Under the pieces are notes generated by a model. That model was given only the letters and a program-made list of their open reading frames with translations, had not been told where the DNA came from and made no database searches. Position numbers and translations under genes: made by a program. This document shows positions 30,977-64,000 of a DNA stretch of 64,000 nucleotides, piece by piece. The first letter of the stretch is position 1; every line of letters begins with the position of its first letter. The DNA comes from Carpediemonas membranifera BICM. Its lineage: Eukaryota; Protista; Fornicata. Where the stretch lies: positions 154,982 to 218,981 of the forward strand of contig JAHDYR010000021.1 in the NCBI GenBank assembly GCA_019828565.1, given 5' to 3'.

Positions 30977-31014
30977 GGTCGATATTGAAGCAATTTGGCG
31001 GACTGCGTCGCCTC

Positions 31015-31049
31015 TGTTGCGCAGTATAAACACATTGTTCGAACCTCCA
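31015..31049. repeat. Direct repeat, downstream end of Fanzor A
   Basis: tgttgcgcagtataaacacattgttcgaacctcca. Confidence 0.9.
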
Positions 31050-31093
31050 GACAGGGCCTGAAAGGAACGATCAAAGTGCCAAACTGCACAACA

Positions 31094-32374: not shown

Positions 32375-32579
32375 ATGTAGAGCCGACGATGAACACCATT
32401 ACCAGCATATACAAGTGTAGAAGTGAATTTAATGTGGAATAGAAGACAATGAGACGACGTGTGAGCGATTGTGAAGTTTGCAGCTGTGCTGACGTCCACG
32501 AAGAAGACGCTTTGTGGAAGCCCTGGAGAAGACGATCTCCCTACCGACTTAAGACGTGAGTAGGAGGGAGACAGGGCAG

Positions 32580-32614
32580 TGTTGCGCAGTATAAACACAT
32601 TGTTTGACCCTTCA
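32580..32614. repeat. Direct repeat, upstream end of Fanzor A
   Basis: tgttgcgcagtataaacacattgtttgacccttca (first 25 bp identical to 31015-31039). Confidence 0.9.
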
Positions 32615-32820
32615 ATTGCACAGCCTCGAGTTGCTAAAACTGCGAAATCCTGCTCACTCGCGGCGTGCTCCAAAGCGCAACCTCTGGGAGCTAACCGTCC
32701 ACGTCCAGACAGGCTGATGCCCGAGTCTTGCAGGTCTGACCAGCCCTACTGACAACCGCACCTGAAGCAACTGCAATCCAAAGAGGGCAAGGGCTGAAAC
32801 TTGCATTTACACGAAACAGC

Positions 32821-33571
32821 TTACACCCCTTCCATCTCCTCCGTGCCGACCATGCGGGGCACAGCGTTCTCCCCGCTCACAACCATGACCTCGAGGTCGC
32901 CGACGACAACCTCGTTGCCAATAGCGTCGCGCATGGCAGCAACGGCGAGCTTGATGGCACCGTTCAGTGAGAGGTCGGCGGGCTCAGTGGCATCCTCGCC
33001 GAGGGACTTCTCGAGGAACGCGGTCAGCTCGGTCTCCTTATTCCCGAGGGCGCAGGCCTTGTAGCCCACAGAGGTTCCAGCCGGGTCTGTGCGGTACAGA
33101 GCGGGGCCGCGCTCGATGTCGATGCCGAAGAAGAGGCCGGCACATCCGTGGGGCCGCATCCACGTCTGCTGTGTCTTCGTGGCGGCCTTGTCGGCCATCC
33201 TCTGAGCAACAAGGTCGACGGGCATTTCGTAGCCGTAGTTGTACATGAACTCTGCTGATTCTGACCGCGCATCTGCCGCTATAGCCAGGGAATCGGCGCT
33301 CATACCGACGGCAGCGAGGGCGACATGCTCGGAAATGCGGTGGAAGCAGGTGATGCTCGATGGATCGAACAGTTTGTCTGAGACCTTCTTGTGTACCGCA
33401 ATAACTACGCAATCATCGCCCCTAATTGCCACAGTGGAGGCTCCGACGTTCCTGATAGCCTTAAAGACGTATTCTGCGTGAGAGAAAAGCATGGAACGCA
33501 CCTATCTGGTACAGACGTCCCTCAGGACTGAAGATGGTGATTTGTCTGTCGAAACCGCTGCTCCGGGACAT
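32821..33571 (-). CDS. PSMA6: 20S proteasome subunit alpha-1 (PSMA6/Scl1); intron near 33475-33501
   Basis: GFDRQITIFSPEGRLYQI|EYVFKAI, KKVSDKL, YGYEMPVD, MRPHG, TDPAG..GYKA. Confidence 0.92.
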
Positions 33572-39150: not shown

Positions 39151-39295
39151 TTCTTCCTTCTCACGCTGCGCATAAACTGCACTGACCTCAAACTGCCAGT
39201 TTCCGGCACTTTCGCGATGAAGAGTTGCTGAAATATGACCCGTAGATGCCCGATAGGTCTCGCTGAGTCCCATACAATGTTGTTAAGCTTGAGCA

Positions 39296-42200
39296 GGAGT
39301 TGCGAAATGGGGTCGACCCCCAATCTGCGAGCTGGATGCAGCCAGACGACGCGCTCCTGGAATCGGCAGGGCGCATTACACCCTGCGTATTCCGGTAGCG
39401 CGCGGTTCTGCCGCGCCCAGATCGTCCCAGTCGGACCCGCCCAGATGGGGTCGACCTCAGATGTCGACACCAGACTCACGCGTCCAATCGCGGGACGGTC
39501 AGCCATGTTTACTTAGCTCTGTGCAATGAATACGCGCTGCTGCTGGCTCGGTGCAAGCAGCTCGAAGTGGCAGCGCGTAGAGTCGACACCAGTCGCACTT
39601 CTGTTCGCGCCCCTCCCGCGGAGCTGTCGCCAGTCGCGTACACTGTGCAATACATCTCATTAGTGCGTCTGATGACGCCAGTGAATTGGCTGTAGCGACT
39701 CGACTCGACGCGTGGTTGTGCGTGTGTCTCACCCAGGTCTGCCCCCCGCACCATGCCGACACGCAACCGCCACTGCTCTCGCTGTGCAGCCCACAGACAC
39801 TGCCCAGTGTGTGCTGAAGGGGCAGCCAGCGGACCTCGGCTCAGTCCGCCAAGCGGCTGGTCGTGCGGGAGTTGCGAAATGGGGTCGACCCCCAATCTGC
39901 GAGCTGGATGCAGCCAGACGACGCGCTCCTGGAATCGGCAGGGCGCATTACACCCTGCGTATTCCGGTAGCGCGCGGTTCTGCCGCGCCCAGATCGTCCC
40001 AGTCGGACCCGCCCAGATGGGGTCGACCTCAGATGTCGACACCAGACTCACGCGTCCAATCGCGGGACGGTCAGCCATGTTTACTTAGCTCTGTGCAATG
40101 AATACGCGCTGCTGCTGGCTCGGTGCAAGCAGCTCGAAGTGGCAGCGCGTAGAGTCGACACCAGTCGCACTTCTGTTCGCGCCCCTCCCGCGGAGCTGTC
40201 GCCAGTCGCGTACACTGTGCAATACATCTCATTAGTGCATCTGATGACGCCAGTGAATTGGCTGTAGCGACTCGACTCGACGCGTGGTTGTGCGTGTGTC
40301 TCACCCAGGTCTGCCCCCGCACCATGCCGACACGCAACCGCCACTGCTCTCGCTGTGCAGCCCACAGACACTGCCCAGTGTGTGCTGAAGGGGCAGCCAG
40401 CGGACCTCGGCTCAGTCCGCCAAGCGGCTGGTCGTGCGGGAGTTGCGAAATGGGGTCGACCCCCAATCTGCGAGCTGGATGCAGCCAGACGACGCGCTCC
40501 TGGAATCGGCAGGGCGCATTACACCCTGCGTATTCCGGTAGCGCGCGGTTCTGCCGCGCCCAGATCGTCCCAGTCGGACCCGCCCAGATGGGGTCGACCT
40601 CAGATGTCGACACCAGACTCACGCGTCCAATCGCGGGACGGTCAGCCATGTTTACTTAGCTCTGTGCAATGAATACGCGCTGCTGCTGGCTCGGTGCAAG
40701 CAGCTCGAAGTGGCAGCGCGTAGAGTCGACACCAGTCGCACTTCTGTTCGCGCCCCTCCCGCGGAGCTGTCGCCAGTCGCGTACACTGTGCAATACATCT
40801 CGTTAGTGCGTCTGATGACGCCAGTGAATTGGCTGTAGCGACTCGACTCGACGCGTGGTTGTGCGTGTGTCTCACCCAGGTCTGCCCCCCGCACCATGCC
40901 GACACGCAACCGCCACTGCTCTCGCTGTGCAGCCCACAGACACTGCCCAGTGTGTGCTGAAGGGGCAGCCAGCGGACCTCGGCTCAGTCCGCCAAGCGGC
41001 TGGTCGTGCGGGAGTTGCGAAATGGGGTCGACCCCCAATCTGCGAGCTGGATGCAGCCAGACGACGCGCTCCTGGAATCGGCAGGGCGCATTACACCCTG
41101 CGTATTCCGGTAGCGCGCGGTTCTGCCGCGCCCAGATCGTCCCAGTCGGACCCGCCCAGATGGGGTCGACCTCAGATGTCGACACCAGACTCACGCGTCC
41201 AATCGCGGGACGGTCAGCCATGTTTACTTAGCTCTGTGCAATGAATACGCGCTGCTGCTGGCTCGGTGCAAGCAGCTCGAAGTGGTAGCGCGTAGAGTCG
41301 ACACCAGTCGCACTTCTGTTCGCGCCCCTCCCGCGGAGCTGTCGCCAGTCGCGTACACTGTGCAATACATCTCATTAGTGCGTCTGATGACGCCAGTGAA
41401 TTGGCTGTAGCGACTCGACTCGACGCGTGGTTGTGCGTGTGTCTCACCCAGGTCTGCCCCCCGCACCATGCCGACACGCAACCGCCACTGCTCTCGCTGT
41501 GCAGCCCACAGACACTGCCCAGTGTGTGCTGAAGGGGCAGCCAGCGGACCTCGGCTCAGTCCGCCAAGCGGCTGGTCGTGCGGGAGTTGCGAAATGGGGT
41601 CGACCCCCAATCTGCGAGCTGGATGCAGCCAGACGACGCGCTCCTGGAATCGGCAGGGCGCATTACACCCTGCGTATTCCGGTAGCGCGCGGTTCTGCCG
41701 CGCCCAGATCGTCCCAGTCGGACCCGCCCAGATGGGGTCGACCTCAGATGTCGACACCAGACTCACGCGTCCAATCGCGGGACGGTCAGCCATGTTTACT
41801 TAGCTCTGTGCAATGAATACGCGCTGCTGCTGGCTCGGTGCAAGCAGCTCGAAGTGGCAGCGCGTAGAGTCGACACCAGTCGCACTTCTGTTCGCGCCCC
41901 TCCCGCGGAGCTGTCGCCAGTCGCGTACACTGTGCAATACATCTCATTAGTGCATCTGATGACGCCAGTGAATTGGCTGTAGCGACTCGACTCGACGCGT
42001 GGTTGTGCGTGTGTCTCACCCAGGTCTGCCCCCCGCACCATGCCGACACGCAACCGCCACTGCTCTCGCTGTGCAGCCCACAGACACTGCCCAGTGTGTG
42101 CTGAAGGGGCAGCCAGCGGACCTCGGCTCAGTCCGCCAAGCGGCTGGTCGTGCGGGAGTTGCGAAATGGGGTCGACCCCCAATCTGCGAGCTGGATGCAG

Positions 42201-45200
42201 CCAGACGACGCGCTCCTGGAATCGGCAGGGCGCATTACACCCTGCGTATTCCGGTAGCGCGCGGTTCTGCCGCGCCCAGATCGTCCCAGTCGGACCCGCC
42301 CAGATGGGGTCGACCTCAGATGTCGACACCAGACTCACGCGTCCAATCGCGGGACGGTCAGCCATGTTTACTTAGCTCTGTGCAATGAATACGCGCTGCT
42401 GCTGGCTCGGTGCAAGCAGCTCGAAGTGGCAGCGCGTAGAGTCGACACCAGTCGCACTTCTGTTCGCGCCCCTCCCGCGGAGCTGTCGCCAGTCGCGTAC
42501 ACTGTGCAATACATCTCATTAGTGCATCTGATGACGCCAGTGAATTGGCTGTAGCGACTCGACTCGACGCGTGGTTGTGCGTGTGTCTCACCCAGGTCTG
42601 CCCCCCGCACCATGCCGACACGCAACCGCCACTGCTCTCGCTGTGCAGCCCACAGACACTGCCCAGTGTGTGCTGAAGGGGCAGCCAGCGGACCTCGGCT
42701 CAGTCCGCCAAGCGGCTGGTCGTGCGGGAGTTGCGAAATGGGGTCGACCCCCAATCTGCGAGCTGGATGCAGCCAGACGACGCGCTCCTGGAATCGGCAG
42801 GGCGCATTACACCCTGCGTATTCCGGTAGCGCGCGGTTCTGCCGCGCCCAGATCGTCCCAGTCGGACCCGCCCAGATGGGGTCGACCTCAGATGTCGACA
42901 CCAGACTCACGCGTCCAATCGCGGGACGGTCAGCCATGTTTACTTAGCTCTGTGCAATGAATACGCGCTGCTGCTGGCTCGGTGCAAGCAGCTCGAAGTG
43001 GCAGCGCGTAGAGTCGACACCAGTCGCACTTCTGTTCGCGCCCCTCCCGCGGAGCTGTCGCCAGTCGCGTACACTGTGCAATACATCTCATTAGTGCGTC
43101 TGATGACGCCAGTGAATTGGCTGTAGCGACTCGACTCGACGCGTGGTTGTGCGTGTGTCTCACCCAGGTCTGCCCCCCGCACCATGCCGACACGCAACCG
43201 CCACTGCTCTCGCTGTGCAGCCCACAGACACTGCCCAGTGTGTGCTGAAGGGGCAGCCAGCGGACCTCGGCTCAGTCCGCCAAGCGGCTGGTCGTGCGGG
43301 AGTTGCGAAATGGGGTCGACCCCCAATCTGCGAGCTGGATGCAGCCAGACGACGCGCTCCTGGAATCGGCAGGGCGCATTACACCCTGCGTATTCCGGTA
43401 GCGCGCGGTTCTGCCGCGCCCAGATCGTCCCAGTCGGACCCGCCCAGATGGGGTCGACCTCAGATGTCGACACCAGACTCACGCGTCCAATCGCGGGACG
43501 GTCAGCCATGTTTACTTAGCTCTGTGCAATGAATACGCGCTGCTGCTGGCTCGGTGCAAGCAGCTCGAAGTGGCAGCGCGTAGAGTCGACACCAGTCGCA
43601 CTTCTGTTCGCGCCCCTCCCGCGGAGCTGTCGCCAGTCGCGTACACTGTGCAATACATCTCATTAGTGCGTCTGATGACGCCAGTGAATTGGCTGTAGCG
43701 ACTCGACTCGACGCGTGGTTGTGCGTGTGTCTCACCCAGGTCTGCCCCCCGCACCATGCCGACACGCAACCGCCACTGCTCTCGCTGTGCAGCCCACAGA
43801 CACTGCCCAGCGTGTGCTGAAGGGGCAGCCAGCGGACCTCGGCTCAGTCCGCCAAGCGGCTGGTCGTGCGGGAGTTGCGAAATGGGGTCGACCCCCAATC
43901 TGCGAGCTGGATGCAGCCAGACGACGCGCTCCTGGAATCGGCAGGGCGCATTACACCCTGCGTATTCCGGTAGCGCGCGGTTCTGCCGCGCCCAGATCGT
44001 CCCAGTCGGACCCGCCCAGATGGGGTCGACCTCAGATGTCGACACCAGACTCACGCGTCCAATCGCGGGACGGTCAGCCATGTTTACTTAGCTCTGTGCA
44101 ATGAATACGCGCTGCTGCTGGCTCGGTGCAAGCAGCTCGAAGTGGCAGCGCGTAGAGTCGACACCAGTCGCACTTCTGTTCGCGCCCCTCCCGCGGAGCT
44201 GTCGCCAGTCGCGTACACTGTGCAATACATCTCATTAGTGCGTCTGATGACGCCAGTGAATTGGCTGTAGCGACTCGACTCGACGCGTGGTTGTGCGTGT
44301 GTCTCACCCAGGTCTGCCCCCCGCACCATGCCGACACGCAACCGCCACTGCTCTCGCTGTGCAGCCCACAGACACTGCCCAGTGTGTGCTGAAGGGGCAG
44401 CCAGCGGACCTCGGCTCAGTCCGCCAAGCGGCTGGTCGTGCGGGAGTTGCGAAATGGGGTCGACCCCCAATCTGCGAGCTGGATGCAGCCAGACGACGCG
44501 CTCCTGGAATCGGCAGGGCGCATTACACCCTGCGTATTCCGGTAGCGCGCGGTTCTGCCGCGCCCAGATCGTCCCAGTCGGACCCGCCCAGATGGGGTCG
44601 ACCTCAGATGTCGACACCAGACTCACGCGTCCAATCGCGGGACGGTCAGCCATGTTTACTTAGCTCTGTGCAATGAATACGCGCTGCTGCTGGCTCGGTG
44701 CAAGCAGCTCGAAGTGGCAGCGCGTAGAGTCGACACCAGTCGCACTTCTGTTCGCGCCCCTCCCGCGGAGCTGTCGCCAGTCGCGTACACTGTGCAATAC
44801 ATCTCATTAGTGCGTCTGATGACGCCAGTGAATTGGCTGTAGCGACTCGACTCGACGCGTGGTTGTGCGTGTGTCTCACCCAGGTCTGCCCCCCGCACCA
44901 TGCCGACACGCAACCGCCACTGCTCTCGCTGTGCAGCCCACAGACACTGCCCAGCGTGTGCTGAAGGGGCAGCCAGCGGACCTCGGCTCAGTCCGCCAAG
45001 CGGCTGGTCGTGCGGGAGTTGCGAAATGGGGTCGACCCCCAATCTGCGAGCTGGATGCAGCCAGACGACGCGCTCCTGGAATCGGCAGGGCGCATTACAC
45101 CCTGCGTATTCCGGTAGCGCGCGGTTCTGCCGCGCCCAGATCGTCCCAGTCGGACCCGCCCAGATGGGGTCGACCTCAGATGTCGACACCAGACTCACGC

Positions 45201-46367
45201 GTCCAATCGCGGGACGGTCAGCCATGTTTACTTAGCTCTGTGCAATGAATACGCGCTGCTGCTGGCTCGGTGCAAGCAGCTCGAAGTGGCAGCGCGTAGA
45301 GTCGACACCAGTCGCACTTCTGTTCGCGCCCCTCCCGCGGAGCTGTCGCCAGTCGCGTACACTGTGCAATACATCTCATTAGTGCGTCTGATGACGCCAG
45401 TGAATTGGCTGTAGCGACTCGACTCGACGCGTGGTTGTGCGTGTGTCTCACCCAGGTCTGCCCCCCGCACCATGCCGACACGCAACCGCCACTGCTCTCG
45501 CTGTGCAGCCCACAGACACTGCCCAGTGTGTGCTGAAGGGGCAGCCAGCGGACCTCGGCTCAGTCCGCCAAGCGGCTGGTCGTGCGGGAGTTGCGAAATG
45601 GGGTCGACCCCCAATCTGCGAGCTGGATGCAGCCAGACGACGCGCTCCTGGAATCGGCAGGGCGCATTACACCCTGCGTATTCCGGTAGCGCGCGGTTCT
45701 GCCGCGCCCAGATCGTCCCAGTCGGACCCGCCCAGATGGGGTCGACCTCAGATGTCGACACCAGACTCACGCGTCCAATCGCGGGACGGTCAGCCATGTT
45801 TACTTAGCTCTGTGCAATGAATACGCGCTGCTGCTGGCTCGGTGCAAGCAGCTCGAAGTGGCAGCGCGTAGAGTCGACACCAGTCGCACTTCTGTTCGCG
45901 CCCCTCCCGCGGAGCTGTCGCCAGTCGCGTACACTGTGCAATACATCTCATTAGTGCGTCTGATGACGCCAGTGAATTGGCTGTAGCGACTCGACTCGAC
46001 GCGTGGTTGTGCGTGTGTCTCACCCAGGTCTGCCCCCCGCACCATGCCGACACGCAACCGCCACTGCTCTCGCTGTGCAGCCCACAGACACTGCCCAGTG
46101 TGTGCTGAAGGGGCAGCCAGCGGACCTCGGCTCAGTCCGCCAAGCGGCTGGTCGTGCGGGAGTTGCGAAATGGGGTCGACCCCCAATCTGCGAGCTGGAT
46201 GCAGCCAGACGACGCGCTCCTGGAATCGGCAGGGCGCATTACACCCTGCGTATTCCGGTAGCGCGCGGTTCTGCCGCGCCCAGATCGTCCCAGTCGGACC
46301 CGCCCAGATGGGGTCGACCTCAGATGTCGACACCAGACTCACGCGTCCAATCGCGGGACGGTCAGCC
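39296..46367. repeat. Tandem array 1 of 572-bp unit (~12.4 copies)
   Basis: Identical ORF patterns recur every 572 bp (one 571-bp unit); only a few SNPs. Confidence 0.98.
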
Positions 46368-46436
46368 TACACCCCACGCAATACACGGCGAAATCAAGCA
46401 AGAATCCCAAGAGTTCACACAAATAACCGCAATAAT

Positions 46437-48785
46437 TTAGTGCTTCCGGGCCCGCTTGCCACCGCCTGCCTTCCGGTTGGCCTCGTGGAACTTCCTGCGT
46501 TCCTCCTCCCACGCGAGCTTCTTCTCCTTCGCGATTTCTTCCTTCGCGATTGTCCGAGACGACTTCATCTGCCTTGCCGCACCCTTGCCGGCCACGATCT
46601 TAACGCCCTTAGCCTTCGGGGCCTTGAGCTGGCCCTGCCTCATTCTGGGGGCGACGTACGCGGCCCTGCTGTCTTCTGCCGTGCCAGTCTGGGGCATGGA
46701 CATTGCACTGTTCTTCTTCCAGCTCTGGTACTGGTTGGACTTCTTATCGCCGGTAACCCGCACTTTAACGCCAGCATTGTTAGTGATGATGCGGGTGCGG
46801 CTCTTGAGGTCGCCCTGCTGGTCCTTGTTGACGTTGACGTACTGCTTGGACTTCTTGTCCCATCGGGTGACCATGCCCTTCGCCCTGAACGCGCTCATGT
46901 CATCCCCGACCATCTCGCTCACCTGTTCGTCGAGGTGCTTCTGTCTCGTGTCACCCATGTTCGCTCCGATGGCCAGGAACTGCTCGTCCAGCACCCGCTG
47001 CCGCTCATACGTCAGGAAACCGGCCTCCACGTACTTATCTGCTCTGGCTGCGAGCGAGTCCTTGCCCCCATCCATGGAGACAGCCACACGGCCCTTCCTC
47101 TGCTTCTTGCCGGCACTCCGGAACTTGGCGATCTTGGCGTCGTCCTGCATTCTCTTGTCGACCCACATGTCCGCAATCTCTCGCCCGGTGTCGCTCTTGT
47201 TGTTGCTCGCACTCAGCTCCATCGCACTCGCTCGGCTCCGGTATTTCGACACAGCCTGAAGTAATTCGTGCCGCTTCACGTCGCCGTCGCTGGATACGAG
47301 CAGCGGGTGGACCTGCGTGACATCCACCTCGGATGCTCCCTCCTTGCCGGGCCGAGAGGCGCCGTCTCTTTTGCGGCAGTAGGCCAAGAAGGCCTTCCCG
47401 GCATCCTCCATAAGCTTGGCGAGCTCCGCATCCTCCATCGCAATCTTGACCTGAGATCCGACCGTATCTATCAGATATTGTGGTATCACGCCAAGCGGTC
47501 CGATCTGACCAGATCTAGTGGGTCCAGGGATCGGGATCCCGAGGAAACGGTGGACGTCGACGAGATAGGGCAGGTCAGCGTGCTCTACAAGTGACCAGGC
47601 GACACCGGGTCGACCAGCCCTGGCGACACGGCCCGTGCGGTGCACGAAGAGCTTGCTGCTGTAGGGGAAGTCGTAGTTGATGACCATGTTCAAATGGGGG
47701 ATGTCGAGGCCTCGGGCCGCGGCGTCTGTGGCGACGAGGATGTCGTGTACACCACTGCGGAAGCCGGCCATGATGTCCCGGCGGGCAGAGACGTCGAGGG
47801 CGTTATAAATGGCCTTCGCCTTGTGCCCCATGCGGTTGAGCAGGCCCATGATGAACTCGCAGTGGTGCCGCGAGCAGCAGAAGATGAGCAGCTTGCCGCC
47901 CTTCCACTGCGACGCCAGCAACTGGCACAGGGCCGCGGGCTTGTCGTCGGATCGCGTGTAGACGTTCTCGATGGTCAGCGTGCTGCTCAGCTTCTCCTCA
48001 TCAGCCAGACGGACGTGCTCTGCGTCCCTCAACTTGGCAGCCCTAAACTGCACCAAGGACTCAGGCAGCGTGGCAGAGACGAGGACCCGCTGGGCCGACT
48101 CGGGCACCTGGTCGATGGTGGTGGTCACCGCCTCGAGGTGCTGGGGCGAGAGAAGCTCGTCTGCCTCATCTAGCACCAGGAACTGCAGGCGAGAGAGGTT
48201 GAGACTGTCGCCGCCCGCCTTGATCTGCGTGATGATGTCCGCCAGACGCTTGGGGGTAGAAACAAGGATGTCTGGTGCTGGAGAAGAAGCCAGGCGAAAG
48301 AACTGCTCTTCAATTTTCGCATTTCCGTGGATCCCGAAGACGGAGAGGGCCGGCTTGCGGCACTTGGCGAGCTTGAGGGCGACACCGACTGTCTGGGAAA
48401 CGAGGTCGATGGTAGGTACGAGAATGATAGCTCTAGGGCCGAACACCTGGGCGTGGTCGCCTAGCTTGGCTATGATTGGGATGAGGAAGGACGCCGTCTT
48501 GCCAGAACCCGTGCGGGATTTGATCAGCGCGTCGTTCCCGTTCATGATGGTCGGAATGGCCTTGCGCTGAATGGGACTGGGCAGCTGAAAGCCGAGCTTG
48601 TTGATAATGGCCTGGACAAGGTCTTCATCAAGCCCCTCGAAGCAGAAGAAGCCATGAGTGCGGCGCTTCATCTTCTTCTCCTCGGTGCCAGTCTTTTCAG
48701 ACGGTTCCTCAGGGAAACGTACGAGATCACATTCCTCGCCACCTGAAAAGTGCACAAGGTCCTCTAGATCGTCGTATTCTACCAT
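46437..48785 (-). CDS. DBP10: DEAD-box RNA helicase DBP10/DDX54
   Basis: PSPIQRKAIP, RTGSGKT, DEAD, SAT, ARGLDIP, HRTGRVARAG; DBP10CT-like RWDKKSKQYV. Confidence 0.93.
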   Translation of the reverse strand: MVEYDDLEDLVHFSGGEECDLVRFPEEPSEKTGTEEKKMKRRTHGFFCFEGLDEDLVQAIINKLGFQLPSPIQRKAIPTIMNGNDALIKSRTGSGKTASFLIPIIAKLGDHAQVFGPRAIILVPTIDLVSQTVGVALKLAKCRKPALSVFGIHGNAKIEEQFFRLASSPAPDILVSTPKRLADIITQIKAGGDSLNLSRLQFLVLDEADELLSPQHLEAVTTTIDQVPESAQRVLVSATLPESLVQFRAAKLRDAEHVRLADEEKLSSTLTIENVYTRSDDKPAALCQLLASQWKGGKLLIFCCSRHHCEFIMGLLNRMGHKAKAIYNALDVSARRDIMAGFRSGVHDILVATDAAARGLDIPHLNMVINYDFPYSSKLFVHRTGRVARAGRPGVAWSLVEHADLPYLVDVHRFLGIPIPGPTRSGQIGPLGVIPQYLIDTVGSQVKIAMEDAELAKLMEDAGKAFLAYCRKRDGASRPGKEGASEVDVTQVHPLLVSSDGDVKRHELLQAVSKYRSRASAMELSASNNKSDTGREIADMWVDKRMQDDAKIAKFRSAGKKQRKGRVAVSMDGGKDSLAARADKYVEAGFLTYERQRVLDEQFLAIGANMGDTRQKHLDEQVSEMVGDDMSAFRAKGMVTRWDKKSKQYVNVNKDQQGDLKSRTRIITNNAGVKVRVTGDKKSNQYQSWKKNSAMSMPQTGTAEDSRAAYVAPRMRQGQLKAPKAKGVKIVAGKGAARQMKSSRTIAKEEIAKEKKLAWEEERRKFHEANRKAGGGKRARKH

Positions 48786-48804
48786 GTGACTTCCGGACGT
48801 GATT

Positions 48805-48836
48805 TGTGCTGCGCAGGATTAGAATTGTTGAGTCCA
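48805..48836. repeat. Direct repeat, downstream end of Fanzor B
   Basis: tgtgctgcgcaggattagaattgttgagtcca. Confidence 0.9.
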
Positions 48837-48948
48837 AAACACACAGTGATCCAAGCAGCATCAGGATCGCAGTGTGGTTCATCATACTCTATCAATCGTG
48901 CGGTGCATATCACGCGCGCTGCAGCGCGTGCTTGCTCAACTTAGCAAG
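48805..48948 (-). ncRNA. Putative Fanzor omegaRNA scaffold
   Basis: Directly after the stop, on the minus strand: CTTGCT-AAGTTG-AGCAAG hairpin, CACGCGC-TGCA-GCGCGCGTG hairpin, CACAC..GATCC..GGATC..GTGTG hairpin; this is the expected position for a TnpB/Fanzor omegaRNA. Confidence 0.55.
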
Positions 48949-50880
48949 TTAATGGTAGCGAGGAAGAGCACCTCTCTGGGAGTCGTAGTGGAAAGGAGAT
49001 TGCTCTATCTGATCTGAAGTTGCATCGTAGGTGCACCAAAGGATGTTCTCGCTGGCGCTCTTATTTCGGTGAGAGAGATTGAGAAGTATGTCTCTCTGCT
49101 CGGGATGCCGACGTAGCCGTTCAACGCGCCATGGAGCTCCCTCGCACGCGGGATTCTGGCAGAGCATGGTGCGGTGTGTGTGCACCACACGTCTGAAGTG
49201 TGCTTTGCAGTATGGGCACACGATGGAAGTGCGGAATTCCGAGACCATCGTGACACTCACGACGACGTTGTGCCGGAACATGATGCCAGGGAGAGCTCGA
49301 GCATAGTGGCGGTACGGAGCACAGGAGGGAGTGCCGGCGGAACCGAACAGTGCAGCCCCATACGCGACTTCGAGGTGAATGGGCTCCGGGGGGCGCCCGC
49401 CGAGATCATCCAGGAGTTGACGTCCAGCCCGGGCGAAGTGCTTCAGGCGCAGACAGTGATTGGCAAAAGTCTCACGGTGGAAACACTTTCTCGTCCCCTC
49501 GTTGATGATCTGAACGATGTTCTCATGGACAAACCTAATCGACTGTTTGAGAGCCTCTAGACTTGTCGTTTTGAACGATGCTGCGCTCATATTCACGCGG
49601 AAAGAGGGGGTGGCAGTGTAGCCACACTTAGCGAGTACGCCAGATACACTCTGCCCGTCTGGGCGGCGGATCGTGTAGCCGCCCAGCGACCGAGCACCAG
49701 GGTCGAAGCCCATGCGAGCTTGAATGTCCGGGGCAGGAGTAGCCTCGGCGTCATCCTGACCGAGCCGAGCCCGCTTGTTGCTGCTACCCTTTTTGTACGT
49801 GGGCCGGTCAGCCACCCGACCGCCACGGTATTTCTCGCGACCCACCCAAACCGTCACAGCAACAGAGACCCCGTCTGTCTTTACAGAGAGCACTCTGCGG
49901 AGCTTGGTGATGTCACCGTGATCACGCTCGTATCTATCAACCTGCTCAGTGGTCTAGTTCTTAGTTGCTGACCAATTCACGTGCACACGGAGGCGCCTCT
50001 TCATCGCTGGGGTGAGCGCTGTTACTCCGCGCTCGATGGTCATGAACCCAGGCCTGACCGGTGCCATCGGCACGAACGGGACGAGCTTCGGCTCTGGCAG
50101 GGCCTGACTGAGCTCGAGGTTCACGGCACGAGTGAGTGTGACCAAGCTGGTCACTGCAGCACTCATGCGCGTGACGCACGACAGCACGCCGACGAGGGCC
50201 TCGGCCACGGTACCAGTGCGACCCACCCGCTGCTCCTCGGGCAATGCATGCATTTGACGATGATGCATGCCATGATCGGCGGCTATGGCGGCAACCTCAG
50301 TGTCGAGCTCGCCTAGGGTGTCGAGAAAATCCTGTCGAACACCTGGCTGATCATGGAGGAGCGGACGCACCCGTTCTAATCCAGCACGAAGACGGGTCAG
50401 GTACCCGGGTGACGCGCGCGAGAGCCAGACCCGGGTGGCTGTGGAGTACTCATCCAACCAGCTCTGAAATGGAAATGCAATTCCAACGTAGGCTTCCCTG
50501 AAGTCCCGGACGAGCGGGGTTATGTCAGGGTCCCTCCACATCGCCAGGTCGCCAATCCACCTGCACCGATCCGCTGCCTTTGCCTTCGACACCTTTTGCT
50601 GAGCAATGACGATCTGCTTGAGGACCTCCTCGTCGAACAGGTTGACCGTCCTCGGTGGGGTCAACGCGTGCGCAGATGCAGAGACGCACGCAAGCAGGCA
50701 AGTGAATGTGTACTTAGCCTGCGTGAAAAGAACGTGAAAAGAACGCATGCCGGGTTCAAGATTTCCTCGCCGCGGCGCGTTGTTATCGCCTCCACCGTTA
50801 ATCTCGCCAATGGCCTTGTTAACGGAAGCCTTCACCGTGTATATCTTGGAAGGCATCGGAGTATATTGAGCTGCCTGCAT
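48949..50880 (-). pseudogene. Fanzor (Fanzor1-like) RNA-guided RuvC nuclease B, ~643 codons, interrupted by one in-frame TAG at 49954-49956
   Basis: ORFs 49954-50880 and 48949-49893 are in one frame, joined by ATKN*TTEQVDRYERDHGDITKLRRV; KTDGVSVAV, RuvC-I GFDPG, Gly at the canonical RuvC-II position (VAYG) with Glu 40 aa later (VSEFRTS), CPYC..CQNPAC, RuvC-III HRNKSASENI. Confidence 0.9.
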
Positions 50881-51213
50881 CGGTCATTTCTTTTCAGGGT
50901 TCATCAGCTAGCAGCATCCCTCAAAACACAAGAAACCAGCATCATGCAGCACAAAGCGTCTTTACTACTAGTTACAACCGCTTTCCACCACTAGTGTCTC
51001 TCACAACAGACGAAGATGACGAAGACGACGACATGAGCTTCAGACGCCGGCAATGGACGACAGATGAGCGCGTAACAGACGAGCACAGATGCGAAAGAAG
51101 ACAGCAGCGTTCGACACAGACGATGGACGACGCATCTTTTCGTGCAGACCGACGACTGAAAGCACGAAAGCCCGATTGTATAGTCGAGGGCTGAAGTGGG
51201 TGAGTGGAGGTAC

Positions 51214-51245
51214 TGTGCCGCGCATGATTAGAATTGTTTAGTCCA
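51214..51245. repeat. Direct repeat, upstream end of Fanzor B
   Basis: tgtgccgcgcatgattagaattgtttagtcca. Confidence 0.9.
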
Positions 51246-51469
51246 GTTAGTTAGCTACACCGACTGTACGCTAACCTGCGTTTTGAGGATTTTGGTAAAA
51301 TATGGCCAGCACCTCGAAAGGCATGGATCCAGAGGTTAAGAACCACGTAATTGACGACATCAACTGCACGATCACGTTTGGCTGCTTCCTCGACCCGTCA
51401 AGTCTCCTCACTTCCCTATACAGCTGCCAAGCAGAGCCATATGCCGGGATTTATAATTATTAAAACAAT

Positions 51470-55323: not shown

Positions 55324-58300
55324 ATCGCGGGACTGTCAGTCAAGCAAATTCAGCTTTGAGCATACGCGCTGCTGGCTCGGTGCAAGCAGCTCGAAGTTGC
55401 AGCGCGTAGAGTCGACACCAGTCGCACTTCTGTTCGCGCCCCTCCCGCGGAGCTGTCGCCAGTCGCGTACACTGTGTAATACATCTCATTAGTGCGTCTG
55501 ATGACGCCAGTGAATTGGCTGTAGCGACTCGACTCGACGCGTGGTTGTGCGTGTGTCTCACCCAGGTCTGCCCCCCGCACCATGCCGACACGCAACCGCC
55601 ACTGCTCTCGCTGTGCAGCCCACAGACACTGCCCAGTGTGTGCTGAAGGGGCAGCCAGCGGACCTCGGCTCAGTCCGCCAAGCGGCTGGTCGTGCGGGAG
55701 TTGCGAAATGGGGTCGACCCCCAATCTGCGAGCTGGATGCAGCCAGACGACGCGCTCCTGGAATCGGCAGGGCGCATTACACCCTGCGTATTCCGGTAGC
55801 GCGCGGTTCTGCCGCGCCCAGATCGTCCCAGTCGGACCCGCCCAGATGGGGTCGACCTCAGATGTCGACACCAGACTCACGCGTCCAATCGCGGGACGGT
55901 CAGCCATGTTTACTTAGCTCTGTGCAATGAATACGCGCTGCTGCTGGCTCGGTGCAAGCAGCTCGAAGTGGCAGCGCGTAGAGTCGACACCAGTCGCACT
56001 TCTGTTCGCGCCCCTCCCGCGGAGCTGTCGCCAGTCGCGTACACTGTGCAATACATCTCATTAGTGCGTCTGATGACGCCAGTGAATTGGCTGTAGCGAC
56101 TCGACTCGACGCGTGGTTGTGCGTGTGTCTCACCCAGGTCTGCCCCCCGCACCATGCCGACACGCAACCGCCACTGCTCTCGCTGTGCAGCCCACAGACA
56201 CTGTCCAGCGTGTGCTGAAGGGGCAGCCAGCGGACCTCGGCTCAGTCCGCCAAGCGGCTGGTCGTGCGGGAGTTGCGAAATGGGGTCGACCCCCAATCTG
56301 CGAGCTGGATGCAGCCAGACGACGCGCTCCTGGAATCGGCAGGGCGCATTACACCCTGCGTATTCCGGTAGCGCGCGGTTCTGCCGCGCCCAGATCGTCC
56401 CAGTCGGACCCGCCCAGATGGGGTCGACCTCAGATGTCGACACCAGACTCACGCGTCCAATCGCGGGACGGTCAGCCATGTTTACTTAGCTCTGTGCAAT
56501 GAATACGCGCTGCTGCTGGCTCGGTGCAAGCAGCTCGAAGTGGCAGCGCGTAGAGTCGACACCAGTCGCACTTCTGTTCGCGCCCCTCCCGCGGAGCTGT
56601 CGCCAGTCGCGTACACTGTGCAATACATCTCATTAGTGCGTCTGATGACGCCAGTGAATTGGCTGTAGCGACTCGACTCGACGCGTGGTTGTGCGTGTGT
56701 CTCACCCAGGTCTGCCCCCCGCACCATGCCGACACGCAACCGCCACTGCTCTCGCTGTGCAGCCCACAGACACTGCCCAGTGTGTGCTGAAGGGGCAGCC
56801 AGCGGACCTCGGCTCAGTCCGCCAAGCGGCTGGTCGTGCGGGAGTTGCGAAATGGGGTCGACCCCCAATCTGCGAGCTGGATGCAGCCAGACGACGCGCT
56901 CCTGGAATCGGCAGGGCGCATTACACCCTGCGTATTCCGGTAGCGCGCGGTTCTGCCGCGCCCAGATCGTCCCAGTCGGACCCGCCCAGATGGGGTCGAC
57001 CTCAGATGTCGACACCAGACTCACGCGTCCAATCGCGGGACGGTCAGCCATGTTTACTTAGCTCTGTGCAATGAATACGCGCTGCTGCTGGCTCGGTGCA
57101 AGCAGCTCGAAGTGGCAGCGCGTAGAGTCGACACCAGTCGCACTTCTGTTCGCGCCCCTCCCGCGGAGCTGTCGCCAGTCGCGTACACTGTGCAATACAT
57201 CTCATTAGTGCGTCTGATGACGCCAGTGAATTGGCTGTAGCGACTCGACTCGACGCGTGGTTGTGCGTGTGTCTCACCCAGGTCTGCCCCCCGCACCATG
57301 CCGACACGCAACCGCCACTGCTCTCGCTGTGCAGCCCACAGACACTGCCCAGTGTGTGCTGAAGGGGCAGCCAGCGGACCTCGGCTCAGTCCGCCAAGCG
57401 GCTGGTCGTGCGGGAGTTGCGAAATGGGGTCGACCCCCAATCTGCGAGCTGGATGCAGCCAGACGACGCGCTCCTGGAATCGGCAGGGCGCATTACACCC
57501 TGCGTATTCCGGTAGCGCGCGGTTCTGCCGCGCCCAGATCGTCCCAGTCGGACCCGCCCAGATGGGGTCGACCTCAGATGTCGACACCAGACTCACGCGT
57601 CCAATCGCGGGACGGTCAGCCATGTTTACTTAGCTCTGTGCAATGAATACGCGCTGCTGCTGGCTCGGTGCAAGCAGCTCGAAGTGGCAGCGCGTAGAGT
57701 CGACACCAGTCGCACTTCTGTTCGCGCCCCTCCCGCGGAGCTGTCGCCAGTCGCGTACACTGTGCAATACATCTCATTAGTGCGTCTGATGACGCCAGTG
57801 AATTGGCTGTAGCGACTCGACTCGACGCGTGGTTGTGCGTGTGTCTCACCCAGGTCTGCCCCCCGCACCATGCCGACACGCAACCGCCACTGCTCTCGCT
57901 GTGCAGCCCACAGACACTGTCCAGCGTGTGCTGAAGGGGCAGCCAGCGGACCTCGGCTCAGTCCGCCAAGCGGCTGGTCGTGCGGGAGTTGCGAAATGGG
58001 GTCGACCCCCAATCTGCGAGCTGGATGCAGCCAGACGACGCGCTCCTGGAATCGGCAGGGCGCATTACACCCTGCGTATTCCGGTAGCGCGCGGTTCTGC
58101 CGCGCCCAGATCGTCCCAGTCGGACCCGCCCAGATGGGGTCGACCTCAGATGTCGACACCAGACTCACGCGTCCAATCGCGGGACGGTCAGCCATGTTTA
58201 CCCAGCTCTGTGCAATGAATACGCGCTGCTGCTGGCTCGGTGCAAGCAGCTCGAAGTGGCAGCGCGTAGAGTCGACACCAGTCGCACTTCTGTTCGCGCC

Positions 58301-61300
58301 CCTCCCGCGGAGCTGTCGCCAGTCGCGTACACTGTGCAATACATCTCATTAGTGCGTCTGATGACGCCAGTGAATTGGCTGTAGCGACTCGACTCGACGC
58401 GTGGTTGTGCGTGTGTCTCACCCAGGTCTGCCCCCCGCACCATGCCGACACGCAACCGCCACTGCTCTCGCTGTGCAGCCCACAGACACTGTCCAGCGTG
58501 TGCTGAAGGGGCAGCCAGCGGACCTCGGCTCAGTCCGCCAAGCGGCTGGTCGTGCGGGAGTTGCGAAATGGGGTCGACCCCCAATCTGCGAGCTGGATGC
58601 AGCCAGACGACGCGCTCCTGGAATCGGCAGGGCGCATTACACCCTGCGTATTCCGGTAGCGCGCGGTTCTGCCGCGCCCAGATCGTCCCAGTCGGACCCG
58701 CCCAGATGGGGTCGACCTCAGATGTCGACACCAGACTCACGCGTCCAATCGCGGGACGGTCAGCCATGTTTACTTAGCTCTGTGCAATGAATACGCGCTG
58801 CTGCTGGCTCGGTGCAAGCAGCTCGAAGTGGCAGCGCGTAGAGTCGACACCAGTCGCACTTCTGTTCGCGCCCCTCCCGCGGAGCTGTCGCCAGTCGCGT
58901 ACACTGTGCAATACATCTCATTAGTGCGTCTGATGACGCCAGTGAATTGGCTGTAGCGACTCGACTCGACGCGTGGTTGTGCGTGTGTCTCACCCAGGTC
59001 TGCCCCCCGCACCATGCCGACACGCAACCGCCACTGCTCTCGCTGTGCAGCCCACAGACACTGCCCAGTGTGTGCTGAAGGGGCAGCCAGCGGACCTCGG
59101 CTCAGTCCGCCAAGCGGCTGGTCGTGCGGGAGTTGCGAAATGGGGTCGACCCCCAATCTGCGAGCTGGATGCAGCCAGACGACGCGCTCCTGGAATCGGC
59201 AGGGCGCATTACACCCTGCGTATTCCGGTAGCGCGCGGTTCTGCCGCGCCCAGATCGTCCCAGTCGGACCCGCCCAGATGGGGTCGACCTCAGATGTCGA
59301 CACCAGACTCACGCGTCCAATCGCGGGACGGTCAGCCATGTTTACTTAGCTCTGTGCAATGAATACGCGCTGCTGCTGGCTCGGTGCAAGCAGCTCGAAG
59401 TGGCAGCGCGTAGAGTCGACACCAGTCGCACTTCTGTTCGCGCCCCTCCCGCGGAGCTGTCGCCAGTCGCGTACACTGTGCAATACATCTCATTAGTGCG
59501 TCTGATGACGCCAGTGAATTGGCTGTAGCGACTCGACTCGACGCGTGGTTGTGCGTGTGTCTCACCCAGGTCTGCCCCCGCACCATGCCGACACACAACC
59601 GCCACTGCTCTCGCTGTGCAGCCCACAGACACTGCCCAGTGTGTGCTGAAGGGGCAGCCAGCGGACCTCGGCTCAGTCCGCCAAGCGGCTGGTCGTGCGG
59701 GAGTTGCGAAATGGGGTCGACCCCCAATCTGCGAGCTGGATGCAGCCAGACGACGCGCTCCTGGAATCGGCAGGGCGCATTACACCCTGCGTATTCCGGT
59801 AGCGCGCGGTTCTGCCGCGCCCAGATCGTCCCAGTCGGACCCGCCCAGATGGGGTCGACCTCAGATGTCGACACCAGACTCACGCGTCCAATCGCGGGAC
59901 GGTCAGCCATGTTTACTTAGCTCTGTGCAATGAATACGCGCTGCTGCTGGCTCGGTGCAAGCAGCTCGAAGTGGCAGCGCGTAGAGTCGACACCAGTCGC
60001 ACTTCTGTTCGCGCCCCTCCCGCGGAGCTGTCGCCAGTCGCGTACACTGTGCAATACATCTCATTAGTGCGTCTGATGACGCCAGTGAATTGGCTGTAGC
60101 GACTCGACTCGACGCGTGGTTGTGCGTGTGTCTCACCCAGGTCTGCCCCCGCACCATGCCGACACGCAACCGCCACTGCTCTCGCTGTGCAGCCCACAGA
60201 CACTGCCCAGTGTGTGCTGGAAGGGGCAGCCAGCGGACCTCGGCTCAGTCCGCCAAGCGGCTGGTCGTGCGGGAGTTGCGAAATGGGGTCGACCCCCAAT
60301 CTGCGAGCTGGATGCAGCCAGACGACGCGCTCCTGGAATCGGCAGGGCGCATTACACCCTGCGTATTCCGGTAGCGCGCGGTTCTGCCGCGCCCAGATCG
60401 TCCCAGTCGGACCCGCCCAGATGGGGTCGACCTCAGATGTCGACACCAGACTCACGCGTCCAATCGCGGGACGGTCAGCCATGTTTACTTAGCTCTGTGC
60501 AATGAATACGCGCTGCTGCTGGCTCGGTGCAAGCAGCTCGAAGTGGCAGCGCGTAGAGTCGACACCAGTCGCACTTCTGTTCGCGCCCCTCCCGCGGAGC
60601 TGTCGCCAGTCGCGTACACTGTGCAATACATCTCATTAGTGCGTCTGATGACGCCAGTGAATTGGCTGTAGCGACTCGACTCGACGCGTGGTTGTGCGTG
60701 TGTCTCACCCAGGTCTGCCCCCCGCACCATGCCGACACGCAACCGCCACTGCTCTCGCTGTGCAGCCCACAGACACTGCCCAGCGTGTGCTGAAGGGGCA
60801 GCCAGCGGACCTCGGCTCAGTCCGCCAAGCGGCTGGTCGTGCGGGAGTTGCGAAATGGGGTCGACCCCCAATCTGCGAGCTGGATGCAGCCAGACGACGC
60901 GCTCCTGGAATCGGCAGGGCGCATTACACCCTGCGTATTCCGGTAGCGCGCGGTTCTGCCGCGCCCAGATCGTCCCAGTCGGACCCGCCCAGATGGGGTC
61001 GACCTCAGATGTCGACACCAGACTCACGCGTCCAATCGCGGGACGGTCAGCCATGTTTACTTAGCTCTGTGCAATGAATACGCGCTGCTGCTGGCTCGGT
61101 GCAAGCAGCTCGAAGTGGCAGCGCGTAGAGTCGACACCAGTCGCACTTCTGTTCGCGCCCCTCCCGCGGAGCTGTCGCCAGTCGCGTACACTGTGCAATA
61201 CATCTCATTAGTGCGTCTGATGACGCCAGTGAATTGGCTGTAGCGACTCGACTCGACGCGTGGTTGTGCGTGTGTCTCACCCAGGTCTGCCCCCGCACCA

Positions 61301-64000
61301 TGCCGACACGCAACCGCCACTGCTCTCGCTGTGCAGCCCACAGACACTGTCCAGCGTGTGCTGAAGGGGCAGCCAGCGGACCTCGGCTCAGTCCGCCAAG
61401 CGGCTGGTCGTGCGGGAGTTGCGAAATGGGGTCGACCCCCAATCTGCGAGCTGGATGCAGCCAGACGACGCGCTCCTGGAATCGGCAGGGCGCATTACAC
61501 CCCTGCGTATTCCGGTAGCGCGCGGTTCTGCCGCGCCCAGATCGTCCCAGTCGGACCCGCCCAGATGGGGTCGACCTCAGATGTCGACACCAGACTCACG
61601 CGTCCAATCGCGGGACGGTCAGCCATGTTTACTTAGCTCTGTGCAATGAATACGCGCTGCTGCTGGCTCGGTGCAAGCAGCTCGAAGTGGCAGCGCGTAG
61701 AGTCGACACCAGTCGCACTTCTGTTCGCGCCCCTCCCGCGGAGCTGTCGCCAGTCGCGTACACTGTGCAATACATCTCATTAGTGCGTCTGATGACGCCA
61801 GTGAATTGGCTGTAGCGACTCGACTCGACGCGTGGTTGTGCGTGTGTCTCACCCAGGTCTGCCCCCCGCACCATGCCGACACGCAACCGCCACTGCTCTC
61901 GCTGTGCAGCCCACAGACACTGCCCAGCGTGTGCTGAAGGGGCAGCCAGCGGACCTCGGCTCAGTCCGCCAAGCGGCTGGTCGTGCGGGAGTTGCGAAAT
62001 GGGGTCGACCCCCAATCTGCGAGCTGGATGCAGCCAGACGACGCGCTCCTGGAATCGGCAGGGCGCATTACACCCTGCGTATTCCGGTAGCGCGCGGTTC
62101 TGCCGCGCCCAGATCGTCCCAGTCGGACCCGCCCAGATGGGGTCGACCTCAGATGTCGACACCAGACTCACGCGTCCAATCGCGGGACGGTCAGCCATGT
62201 TTACTTAGCTCTGTGCAATGAATACGCGCTGCTGCTGGCTCGGTGCAAGCAGCTCGAAGTGGCAGCGCGTAGAGTCGACACCAGTCGCACTTCTGTTCGC
62301 GCCCCTCCCGCGGAGCTGTCGCCAGTCGCGTACACTGTGCAATACATCTCATTAGTGCGTCTGATGACGCCAGTGAATTGGCTGTAGCGACTCGACTCGA
62401 CGCGTGGTTGTGCGTGTGTCTCACCCAGGTCTGCCCCCCGCACCATGCCGACACGCAACCGCCACTGCTCTCGCTGTGCAGCCCACAGACACTGCCCAGC
62501 GTGTGCTGAAGGGGCAGCCAGCGGACCTCGGCTCAGTCCGCCAAGCGGCTGGTCGTGCGGGAGTTGCGAAATGGGGTCGACCCCCAATCTGCGAGCTGGA
62601 TGCAGCCAGACGACGCGCTCCTGGAATCGGCAGGGCGCATTACACCCTGCGTATTCCGGTAGCGCGCGGTTCTGCCGCGCCCAGATCGTCCCAGTCGGAC
62701 CCGCCCAGATGGGGTCGACCTCAGATGTCGACACCAGACTCACGCGTCCAATCGCGGGACGGTCAGCCATGTTTACTTAGCTCTGTGCAATGAATACGCG
62801 CTGCTGCTGGCTCGGTGCAAGCAGCTCGAAGTGGCAGCGCGTAGAGTCGACACCAGTCGCACTTCTGTTCGCGCCCCTCCCGCGGAGCTGTCGCCAGTCG
62901 CGTACACTGTGCAATACATCTCATTAGTGCGTCTGATGACGCCAGTGAATTGGCTGTAGCGACTCGACTCGACGCGTGGTTGTGCGTGTGTCTCACCCAG
63001 GTCTGCCCCCCGCACCATGCCGACACGCAACCGCCACTGCTCTCGCTGTGCAGCCCACAGACACTGCCCAGCGTGTGCTGAAGGGGCAGCCAGCGGACCT
63101 CGGCTCAGTCCGCCAAGCGGCTGGTCGTGCGGGAGTTGCGAAATGGGGTCGACCCCCAATCTGCGAGCTGGATGCAGCCAGACGACGCGCTCCTGGAATC
63201 GGCAGGGCGCATTACACCCTGCGTATTCCGGTAGCGCGCGGTTCTGCCGCGCCCAGATCGTCCCAGTCGGACCCGCCCAGATGGGGTCGACCTCAGATGT
63301 CGACACCAGACTCACGCGTCCAATCGCGGGACGGTCAGCCATGTTTACTTAGCTCTGTGCAATGAATACGCGCTGCTGCTGGCTCGGTGCAAGCAGCTCG
63401 AAGTGGCAGCGCGTAGAGTCGACACCAGTCGCACTTCTGTTCGCGCCCCTCCCGCGGAGCTGTCGCCAGTCGCGTACACTGTGCAATACATCTCATTAGT
63501 GCGTCTGATGACGCCAGTGAATTGGCTGTAGCGACTCGACTCGACGCGTGGTTGTGCGTGTGTCTCACCCAGGTCTGCCCCCCGCACCATGCCGACACGC
63601 AACCGCCACTGCTCTCGCTGTGCAGCCCACAGACACTGCCCAGCGTGTGCTGAAGGGGCAGCCAGCGGACCTCGGCTCAGTCCGCCAAGCGGCTGGTCGT
63701 GCGGGAGTTGCGAAATGGGGTCGACCCCCAATCTGCGAGCTGGATGCAGCCAGACGACGCGCTCCTGGAATCGGCAGGGCGCATTACACCCTGCGTATTC
63801 CGGTAGCGCGCGGTTCTGCCGCGCCCAGATCGTCCCAGTCGGACCCGCCCAGATGGGGTCGACCTCAGATGTCGACACCAGACTCACGCGTCCAATCGCG
63901 GGACGGTCAGCCATGTTTACTTAGCTCTGTGCAATGAATACGCGCTGCTGCTGCTGGCTCAGTGCAAAGCAGCTCCCGAGAAGTAATGGCAGCGCGGCAG
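55324..64000. repeat. Tandem array 2 of the same 572-bp unit (>15 copies, runs off the window)
   Basis: Same unit and orientation as array 1; first ~40 bp diverged; last ~50 bp degraded. Confidence 0.98.

Follow-up and report, generated by a model that had tools for sequence, protein, structure and literature searches.

Fanzor elements of Carpediemonas membranifera with terminal direct repeats are built like miniature LTR retroelements

Fanzor1 nucleases are known from DNA transposons and large DNA viruses (SpuFz, PpFz, GtFz and SfAV-type stand-alone genes), and the Fanzor genes reported here resemble them in size (about 640 aa), in the DPG motif of RuvC-I, in a RuvC-II Glu six residues before the zinc finger, in an RD motif, in a structured 3' RNA (predicted here) whose last stem ends at the element end, and in the non-autonomous nature of their carriers. 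However, these carriers have direct repeats, a purine tract and a variable 5-bp target site duplication (TSD) instead of TIR, Helitron or IS607 ends, and no conserved bases that could act as the usual TAM lie by the insertion point. The carriers listed by Bao and Jurka are all DNA transposons (PMC3627910), Jiang et al. mention Gypsy solely as a neighbouring feature inside a 10-kb range (10.1101/2023.06.13.544871), and a 2026 review knows of no example of such a retrotransposon-type carrier. No literature treating Carpediemonas together with Fanzor was found in our search, nor any description of this mobilisation mode, which a first-pass annotation of the locus had suspected to be undescribed.

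The elements are also reminiscent of TRIMs and other Ty3/gypsy-mobilised elements, with which they share short direct repeats of the TG...CA type, a purine tract before the 3' repeat, a 5-bp TSD, solo copies, a series of internal deletions and the absence of gag-pol, whereas the repeats here measure only 41-56 bp, differ in their 3' parts, are followed by no tRNA primer site and enclose an antisense nuclease gene. Ty3 and Tf1 are LTR elements that target promoters, and a fixed short distance from a promoter-like motif is common to them and the present elements, which differ in a fixed orientation that would drive the cargo gene. Termini of the TGT...ACA type and short TSDs are likewise found in DDE elements (Ginger, IS481/IS481EU and Tn7, the last with a fixed offset from a motif), but the present elements have neither TIRs of useful length nor a transposase gene, and direct repeats and a purine tract are not known as features of those groups (PMC10045372).

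The window, that is, the whole stretch of 64,000 nucleotides of C. membranifera BICM that was analysed (contig JAHDYR010000021.1, positions 154,982 to 218,981), holds two such elements, A and B. The first-pass annotation had described repeat pairs at 31015-31049/32580-32614 (A, 32/35 identical, 91%) and 48805-48836/51214-51245 (B, 29/32 identical, 91%); realignment reproduced both, and the chance expectation for either is below 1e-4 in the 64-kb window. A core common to the A and B repeats, Fanzor-like and clearly diverged proteins, and the absence of a transposase ORF inside A or B among the ORFs of the window were also found as described. In contrast, the elements do not stop at the right-hand repeats as delimited there, as A reaches 32622 and B about 51259, and the supposed two independent loci belong to families with about 200 nearly identical repeat sites each (204 B-type and 230 A-type sites in the genome, none in the controls). 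The claim that terminal inverted repeats are missing holds as far as proper TIRs are concerned, although a minimal inversion (TGT/ACA) is present at the ends, and the leftmost 79 bp of A are bounded by a 14-bp imperfect inverted match.

Element B (48805-51259, about 2.45 kb) is a broken copy of its family with an atypical right end. Its 41-bp left terminal repeat R1 (TGTG...CACA; 48805-48845, plus strand) lies within a candidate omegaRNA scaffold on the minus strand (48805-48948), made up of a hairpin and, up to the element end, a long terminal stem. The adjacent Fanzor1-type gene (48949-50880, minus strand) retains the RuvC-I Asp (49702-49704) and the RuvC-II Glu (49237-49239), but an in-frame stop interrupts it at codon 309 (49954-49956), and RuvC-III carries an Asp to Asn exchange (49063-49065). 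A purine-rich tract (51192-51213, plus strand; 16/22 purines, the weakest of three families) directly precedes R2 (51214-51243, plus strand), the 30-bp core in common with R1. The R2 tail of this copy (51244-51259, plus strand) is atypical, the family norm being TAAA, an optional LINE 3' fragment and then TAAATACCACA. Other copies align to 48805-51243 of the window, and the right end was set by its spacing to the host target motif CTAACCTGCG (51271-51280, plus strand), which starts 11 bp past that end and may be promoter-like, judging by its position. The left 5 bp (TGATT, 48800-48804, plus strand) do not match the right 5 bp (CCGAC, 51260-51264), so the window copy has lost its TSD; right ends in family B are often scarred by small deletions and extended duplications. 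On the other side, the ATG of a host DBP10-type DEAD-box helicase gene (46437-48785, minus strand) is located 19 bp outside the left end. Besides, two arrays of a 572-bp tandem unit (39244-46406 and 55350-64000; 28 copies, nearly 100% identical) enclose a 9-kb island holding element B; the unit contains a 189-aa open frame and gave no Pfam, Rfam or tRNA match.

Element A (31015-32622) is a family-A Fanzor element with an internal deletion; longer copies exceed it by about 670 bp, and the same deleted form recurs in at least 10 copies. Matches of other copies stop at 32622, and the element is framed by GCCTC on both sides (31010-31014 and 32623-32627, plus strand). Its left unit (31015-31093, plus strand) holds R1 (about 35 bp) and a 79-bp unit whose ends are inverted, and the predicted minus-strand fold of this unit corresponds to the omegaRNA terminal stem. 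The Fanzor gene (approximately 31200-32374, minus strand) is frameshifted and N-terminally deleted, with the RuvC D/E/D residues retained in separate frames. A polypurine tract (32558-32579, plus strand; 19/22 purines) precedes R2 (32580-32622, plus strand), a 43-bp TGT...ACA repeat. The first-pass annotation had proposed a search for single-repeat copies, and this 43-bp unit was indeed found alone, with its own TSD, at locus L041. Past the right TSD lies the host target motif CTAAAACTGCG (32634-32644, plus strand), which A separates from a Ctf8-like gene on the minus strand (ATG 30976, 38 bp from A). Sites with tract plus R2 in family A (126 in the genome) outnumber R1 plus solo sites (about 104), and an exact R1 was located upstream in only 21 of 61 tract-plus-R2 sites; left ends of this family may be truncated or diverged. 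Two further features of the window were noted. Near the 5' end of a proteasome alpha-subunit gene (about 33490-33520), a 28-nt intron corresponds to a gap in two contigs, and at 996-3760/4144-6914 two inverted copies of about 2.8 kb, near-perfect and 383 bp apart, cover an acyl-CoA ligase (ATP-grasp) gene, one arm being frameshifted; this duplication is a recent palindrome or an assembly feature.

Genome-wide comparison substantiated the proposal of a transposase-less Fanzor family with element-encoded terminal direct repeats. The C-terminal half of the B protein has 130 protein matches, including a tier at 50-55% identity, and at about 30 B loci the left repeat has the same TGTG start and the right repeat is equally constant, although the surrounding flanks are unrelated. 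The true ends are TGT...ACA, and the unit is framed by a 5-bp TSD outside them, which in family B is exact at 15 of 24 loci by script and at two more by eye (L018 and L033; 17/24 in total), has one mismatch in three and is absent in four. The 5-bp TSD was also seen at L002 and L003 and around element A. The elements insert in one orientation, at a distance of 11-12 bp from a host TAAACTGCAC-like motif: beyond the right TSD, 5-6 free bases are followed by a motif close to C[ATG]TAAACTGCAC, and the arrangement ACA-N11-13-motif occurs 149 times in the genome compared with 8 for the control. This fixed spacing and orientation bears out the site-selective insertion that had been suspected from the window. 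Several element-free copies of the motif in the window lie tens of bases upstream of host ATGs, and we therefore read it as a core-promoter motif. Seen in the Fanzor orientation, the motif points into the element, so that a host promoter would drive the Fanzor gene. The core common to the A and B repeats is itself a similar motif. No conserved bases adjoin the insertion point among B loci, and thus no standard TAM is evident. Ends of the A and B families are stacked at one site in L014:1304-1360, L041:3979-4030 and L045:1463-1500, indicating that the families re-use the same targets. At G000:C8:931003-935577, the right end of a B copy, including the LINE piece and the flank, is present three times at intervals of about 2.08 kb. 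We also considered the repeats as host splice or trans-splice signals, which was rejected, as the local intron has only 28 nt and the repeats move with the element.

An intact copy in L039 (1645-3573, minus strand) encodes a 642-aa frame with all three catalytic residues. The Fanzor1 RuvC signature DPG...E-x6-CxxC...C...RD-x5-N, a search pattern taken from bioRxiv 10.1101/2023.08.09.552727, fits this copy and P0056, while window copy B fails it owing to the Asp to Asn exchange. The protein obtained an Atlas feature score of 0.98 and TM values of 0.59-0.64 to Cas12f1-like/TnpB clusters of large viruses. The AlphaFold model, built on a shallow alignment, is poor (pLDDT 43), with SpuFz, PpFz and GtFz as the best PDB matches (E 5.5e-4, low TM), and sequence searches of Pfam and PDB gave no significant match. 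No alignable outgroup was recovered for placement among Fanzor1 and Fanzor2, and the Fanzor1 assignment is based on size, motif and structural neighbours. Across copies, pN/pS values of 0.4-0.6 show moderate constraint and most copies keep the RuvC-III Asp; deleted or dead copies have also spread, which argues that the Fanzor is dispensable in cis. P0002, a 532-aa member of the same family named 'cytosine deaminase' by NCBI, looks mis-annotated.

The 3' non-coding region is predicted to form a hairpin and then a long stem closing at the element end, in which R1 is the 3' arm. The fold z-scores are -4.05 in A, -3.83 in the metagenomic relative described below and -1.57 in B, where the signal is weak; a 14-bp palindrome at +111 in B coincides with a predicted omegaRNA hairpin. 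An Rfam search of this region yielded no match, and the tRNA scan was likewise blank. This predicted layout is the usual Fanzor one, in which the guide would come from the flank beyond 48805. Two other roles were considered and disfavoured: the repeat itself as guide, targeting R2 or solos of its own kind, as R1 is paired in the predicted terminal stem in all three families, and a CAST-like insertion guided by a dead Fanzor, as most copies keep the RuvC-III Asp and target and element have just a short motif in common.

A JGI metagenome contig (3300027985, locus L051) carries an intact 646-aa Fanzor that is 41% identical to B. It displays the same layout, with repeats of 56 and 49 bp, both TGAAG...CTTCA, that match a third Carpediemonas family seen in L036; no clean TSD is recognisable around this copy, and the motif there has the opposite orientation. 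A DNA scan of metagenomes gave no match. The third family was observed at L036:4010-5445, where a B copy is inserted in its left repeat, which holds the target motif. The sequence comparison covered 50 loci, and statements on families A and C are drawn from coordinates, short pattern matches and copies inside other loci that were examined.

The general layout consists of a left repeat, the cargo, a purine tract and a right repeat, with the Fanzor gene antisense to the repeats. In three families the purine tract abuts R2 and not R1 (19/22 purines in A, 20/22 in L051 and 16/22 in B), against a background frequency of 0.001 for at least 19 purines in 22. The repeat sequences of the three families are unrelated, yet match within each family, so the two ends have evolved together. 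Of the features by which TRIMs are recognised, TG...CA termini with a TSD of 4-6 bp are present, and so is a polypurine tract immediately before the 3' repeat, which is evident in A and L051 but weaker in B. The textbook LTR cycle gives two identical repeats. Here, the last 11 bp of R1 occur in R2 at none of about 28 B loci, and pairing R1 with the R2 of its own copy gives no closer match than pairing across copies (2.45 versus 2.73 mismatches, permutation p 0.21), position 6 being the sole concordant one in the shared 30 bp (p 0.03). No tRNA primer site of the TGG type follows R1, nor does a perfect palindrome directly follow the 41-bp R1. Because the tails differ, no excess likeness exists within copies and no tRNA primer site follows, the elements depart from the textbook LTR cycle; they look and probably work like mini-LTR elements, but should not be classed as TRIMs. 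The genome contains at least 150 rve-integrase matches (716 candidates). A helper with matching ends was not found, and among the top rve matches listed, none adjoined a motif-flanked end by eye. Solo candidates with no listed partner account for 28 of 100 listed B sites and 29 of 100 listed A sites, both being upper bounds. As to other classes, the outer ends share only a 3-5 bp inversion, short of the ends of TIR DNA transposons, and the constant 5-bp TSD and TGT/ACA ends are at odds with Helitrons (no TSD or a T-rich target, and a 3' hairpin with a CTRR end).

The right repeat of family B has a further peculiarity, as a LINE 3' piece of 24-464 bp lies between two TAAA in R2 at about 22 of 28 loci. 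These 22 loci hold about 19 different junctions, which do not track the element tree, and the closest B relatives (about 1% apart) carry different LINE pieces; only L039 and L043 have one junction in common, which fits copying of the whole unit. B copies include mosaics, and in L002 the Fanzor body is joined directly to a LINE piece without R2. About 100 LINE pieces occur in the genome; a single one reaches into a longer frame and has no R2 tail after it, and at least 33 of 53 checked pieces adjoin a listed repeat or Fanzor match. The LINE frame shows a PD-(D/E)xK-like RLE motif by eye and no Pfam match. Like site-specific RLE non-LTR retrotransposons and U6/L1 chimeras, the pieces are 5'-truncated, RLE-like 3' ends stacked at one site; unlike those, they stay below 470 bp and are nearly confined to R2, with the source copy apparently elsewhere. 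The only longer copy of the donor LINE, with a 392-aa frame, was located at G000:C1:1440943-1441397, and a related LINE family (C10:333797, C26:444525 and C3:179090) has frames of 1391-1505 aa. There are hints that full-length LINE copies may have neither the motif nor a 5-bp TSD. The pieces could stem from repeated hits of a site-specific LINE on R2 of elements already inserted, until R2 is saturated, or from the capture of LINE RNA ends during a strand transfer at the birth of each copy. Capture is somewhat favoured by the pieces being short and nearly confined to R2, and this forms part of the case for reverse transcription made below.

A and B are copies of high-copy non-autonomous elements built like miniature LTR retroelements (TRIM-like), and we lean slightly towards the view that a retroviral-type integrase acting in trans inserts such elements, with reverse transcription as the probable preceding step. 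The DDE integrase would most likely be supplied by one of the genome's numerous elements with an rve integrase, which are probably of the Ty3/gypsy type, and would be tethered at the host core-promoter motif, and reverse transcription with plus-strand priming at the purine tract would provide the copy. The route would differ from the textbook one in that the ends share only the outer 25-34 bp, the right-hand tail being joined at a sloppy junction that in family B would usually contain a LINE 3' end. Oriented insertion would place a host promoter before the Fanzor gene, the omegaRNA would run through R1 into the flank, which would serve as guide, and solos may arise via R1 x R2 recombination. 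The Fanzor would be cargo that is dispensable in cis, with homing into the empty allele as a possible benefit. A more specific version, which we put forward as a tentative possibility, holds that Fanzor genes spread as RNA by gypsy reverse transcriptase and integrase via non-standard strand transfer, that LINE mRNA ends are a record of this, and that homing keeps the nuclease.

Transposition at the DNA level by a DDE enzyme that reads the TGT and ACA ends, be it Ginger/IS481EU-like or a gypsy integrase acting on DNA, would agree with the different tails and independent haplotypes of R1 and R2 and with the one copy pair sharing a LINE junction. The purine tract and repeats would then either serve as binding sites or be left over from an LTR ancestor, and R2 would be hit later by a site-specific LINE; RLE-type LINEs are often site-specific for repeats (PMC4640811), and restorative homing by a Fanzor is sensible only for elements that excise (PMC13565253). 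Nevertheless, proper TIRs are missing, the purine tract, kept at the boundary of R2 throughout three diverged families, would have no role, some 80% of B copies would have to be struck by a LINE independently, always with a piece below 470 bp, and the one long LINE copy has no R2 tail after it; we consider this reading rather unlikely. The chimera of LINE and element could also be made in one step, if an RLE LINE nicked beside the motif, started on its own RNA and jumped to the element RNA, a jump for which U6/L1 chimeras are a precedent. Such LINE-driven retroposition would explain the LINE 3' piece of varying length at the right end of most B copies, along with slippage of the tail and additional bases at the junctions, the direct Fanzor-LINE joint in L002, right ends far more scarred than left ones, and the surplus of tract-plus-R2 sites over R1 plus solo sites in family A. 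We regard it as improbable, as TSD length and target are unchanged in family A although LINE tails are missing there, the terminal TAAATACCACA is similar to the tail of R1 and absent after the long LINE copy, most left ends start exactly at TGTG and the TSD length is constant at 5 bp.

The two explanations offered by the first-pass annotation, att-like excision and unusually long TSDs, fared less well. In the former, a Fanzor circle with one repeat would be integrated into, and excised from, a solo repeat by a Tyr/Ser recombinase; in its favour, solos do exist, recombination is apparent in the repeat haplotypes, and the body tree is not reflected in the features of the right end. Ends of the TGT...ACA type with a short TSD are, however, the mark of a DDE integrase rather than a Tyr/Ser recombinase. 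Both solos and full copies have TGT...ACA ends and a locus-specific 5-bp TSD, which disfavours an att-type mechanism, since an integrase-type event would be needed for the TSD regardless. Elements of the YR/SR type make no TSD (PMC3627910), contrary to the 5-bp TSD seen here, no Tyr/Ser recombinase gene is present inside the elements or linked to them, and solos are explained by ordinary homologous recombination. At locus A, no empty allele, solo allele or circle junction was seen, only internal deletions of other copies, although this counts for little as evidence of absence, the comparison having covered assembled contigs alone. Recombinase-mediated movement is very unlikely in our view. Still less probable, to the point of being negligible, is that the repeats are long target-site duplications, an appearance given at single loci only: this option is refuted by the recurrence of one repeat at about 200 sites per family in unrelated surroundings, with the true 5-bp TSD outside it.

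If the favoured spread by reverse transcription is correct, these elements would represent a carrier type for which the 2026 review knows of no example, and the more specific reading, if true, would mean a retrotransposon-borne OMEGA system that acquires new expression and a new guide at every site. If transposition instead proceeds at the DNA level, the elements would still be an undescribed carrier with direct-repeat ends. Retroelement-type ends have been kept across lineages 41-55% identical in protein, with catalytic residues kept, also outside this genome, a persistence that makes the claim of the 2026 review directly testable. The locus further offers a very divergent, compact Fanzor with no usual TAM by its insertion site, and a promoter-targeting integration system in a metamonad.
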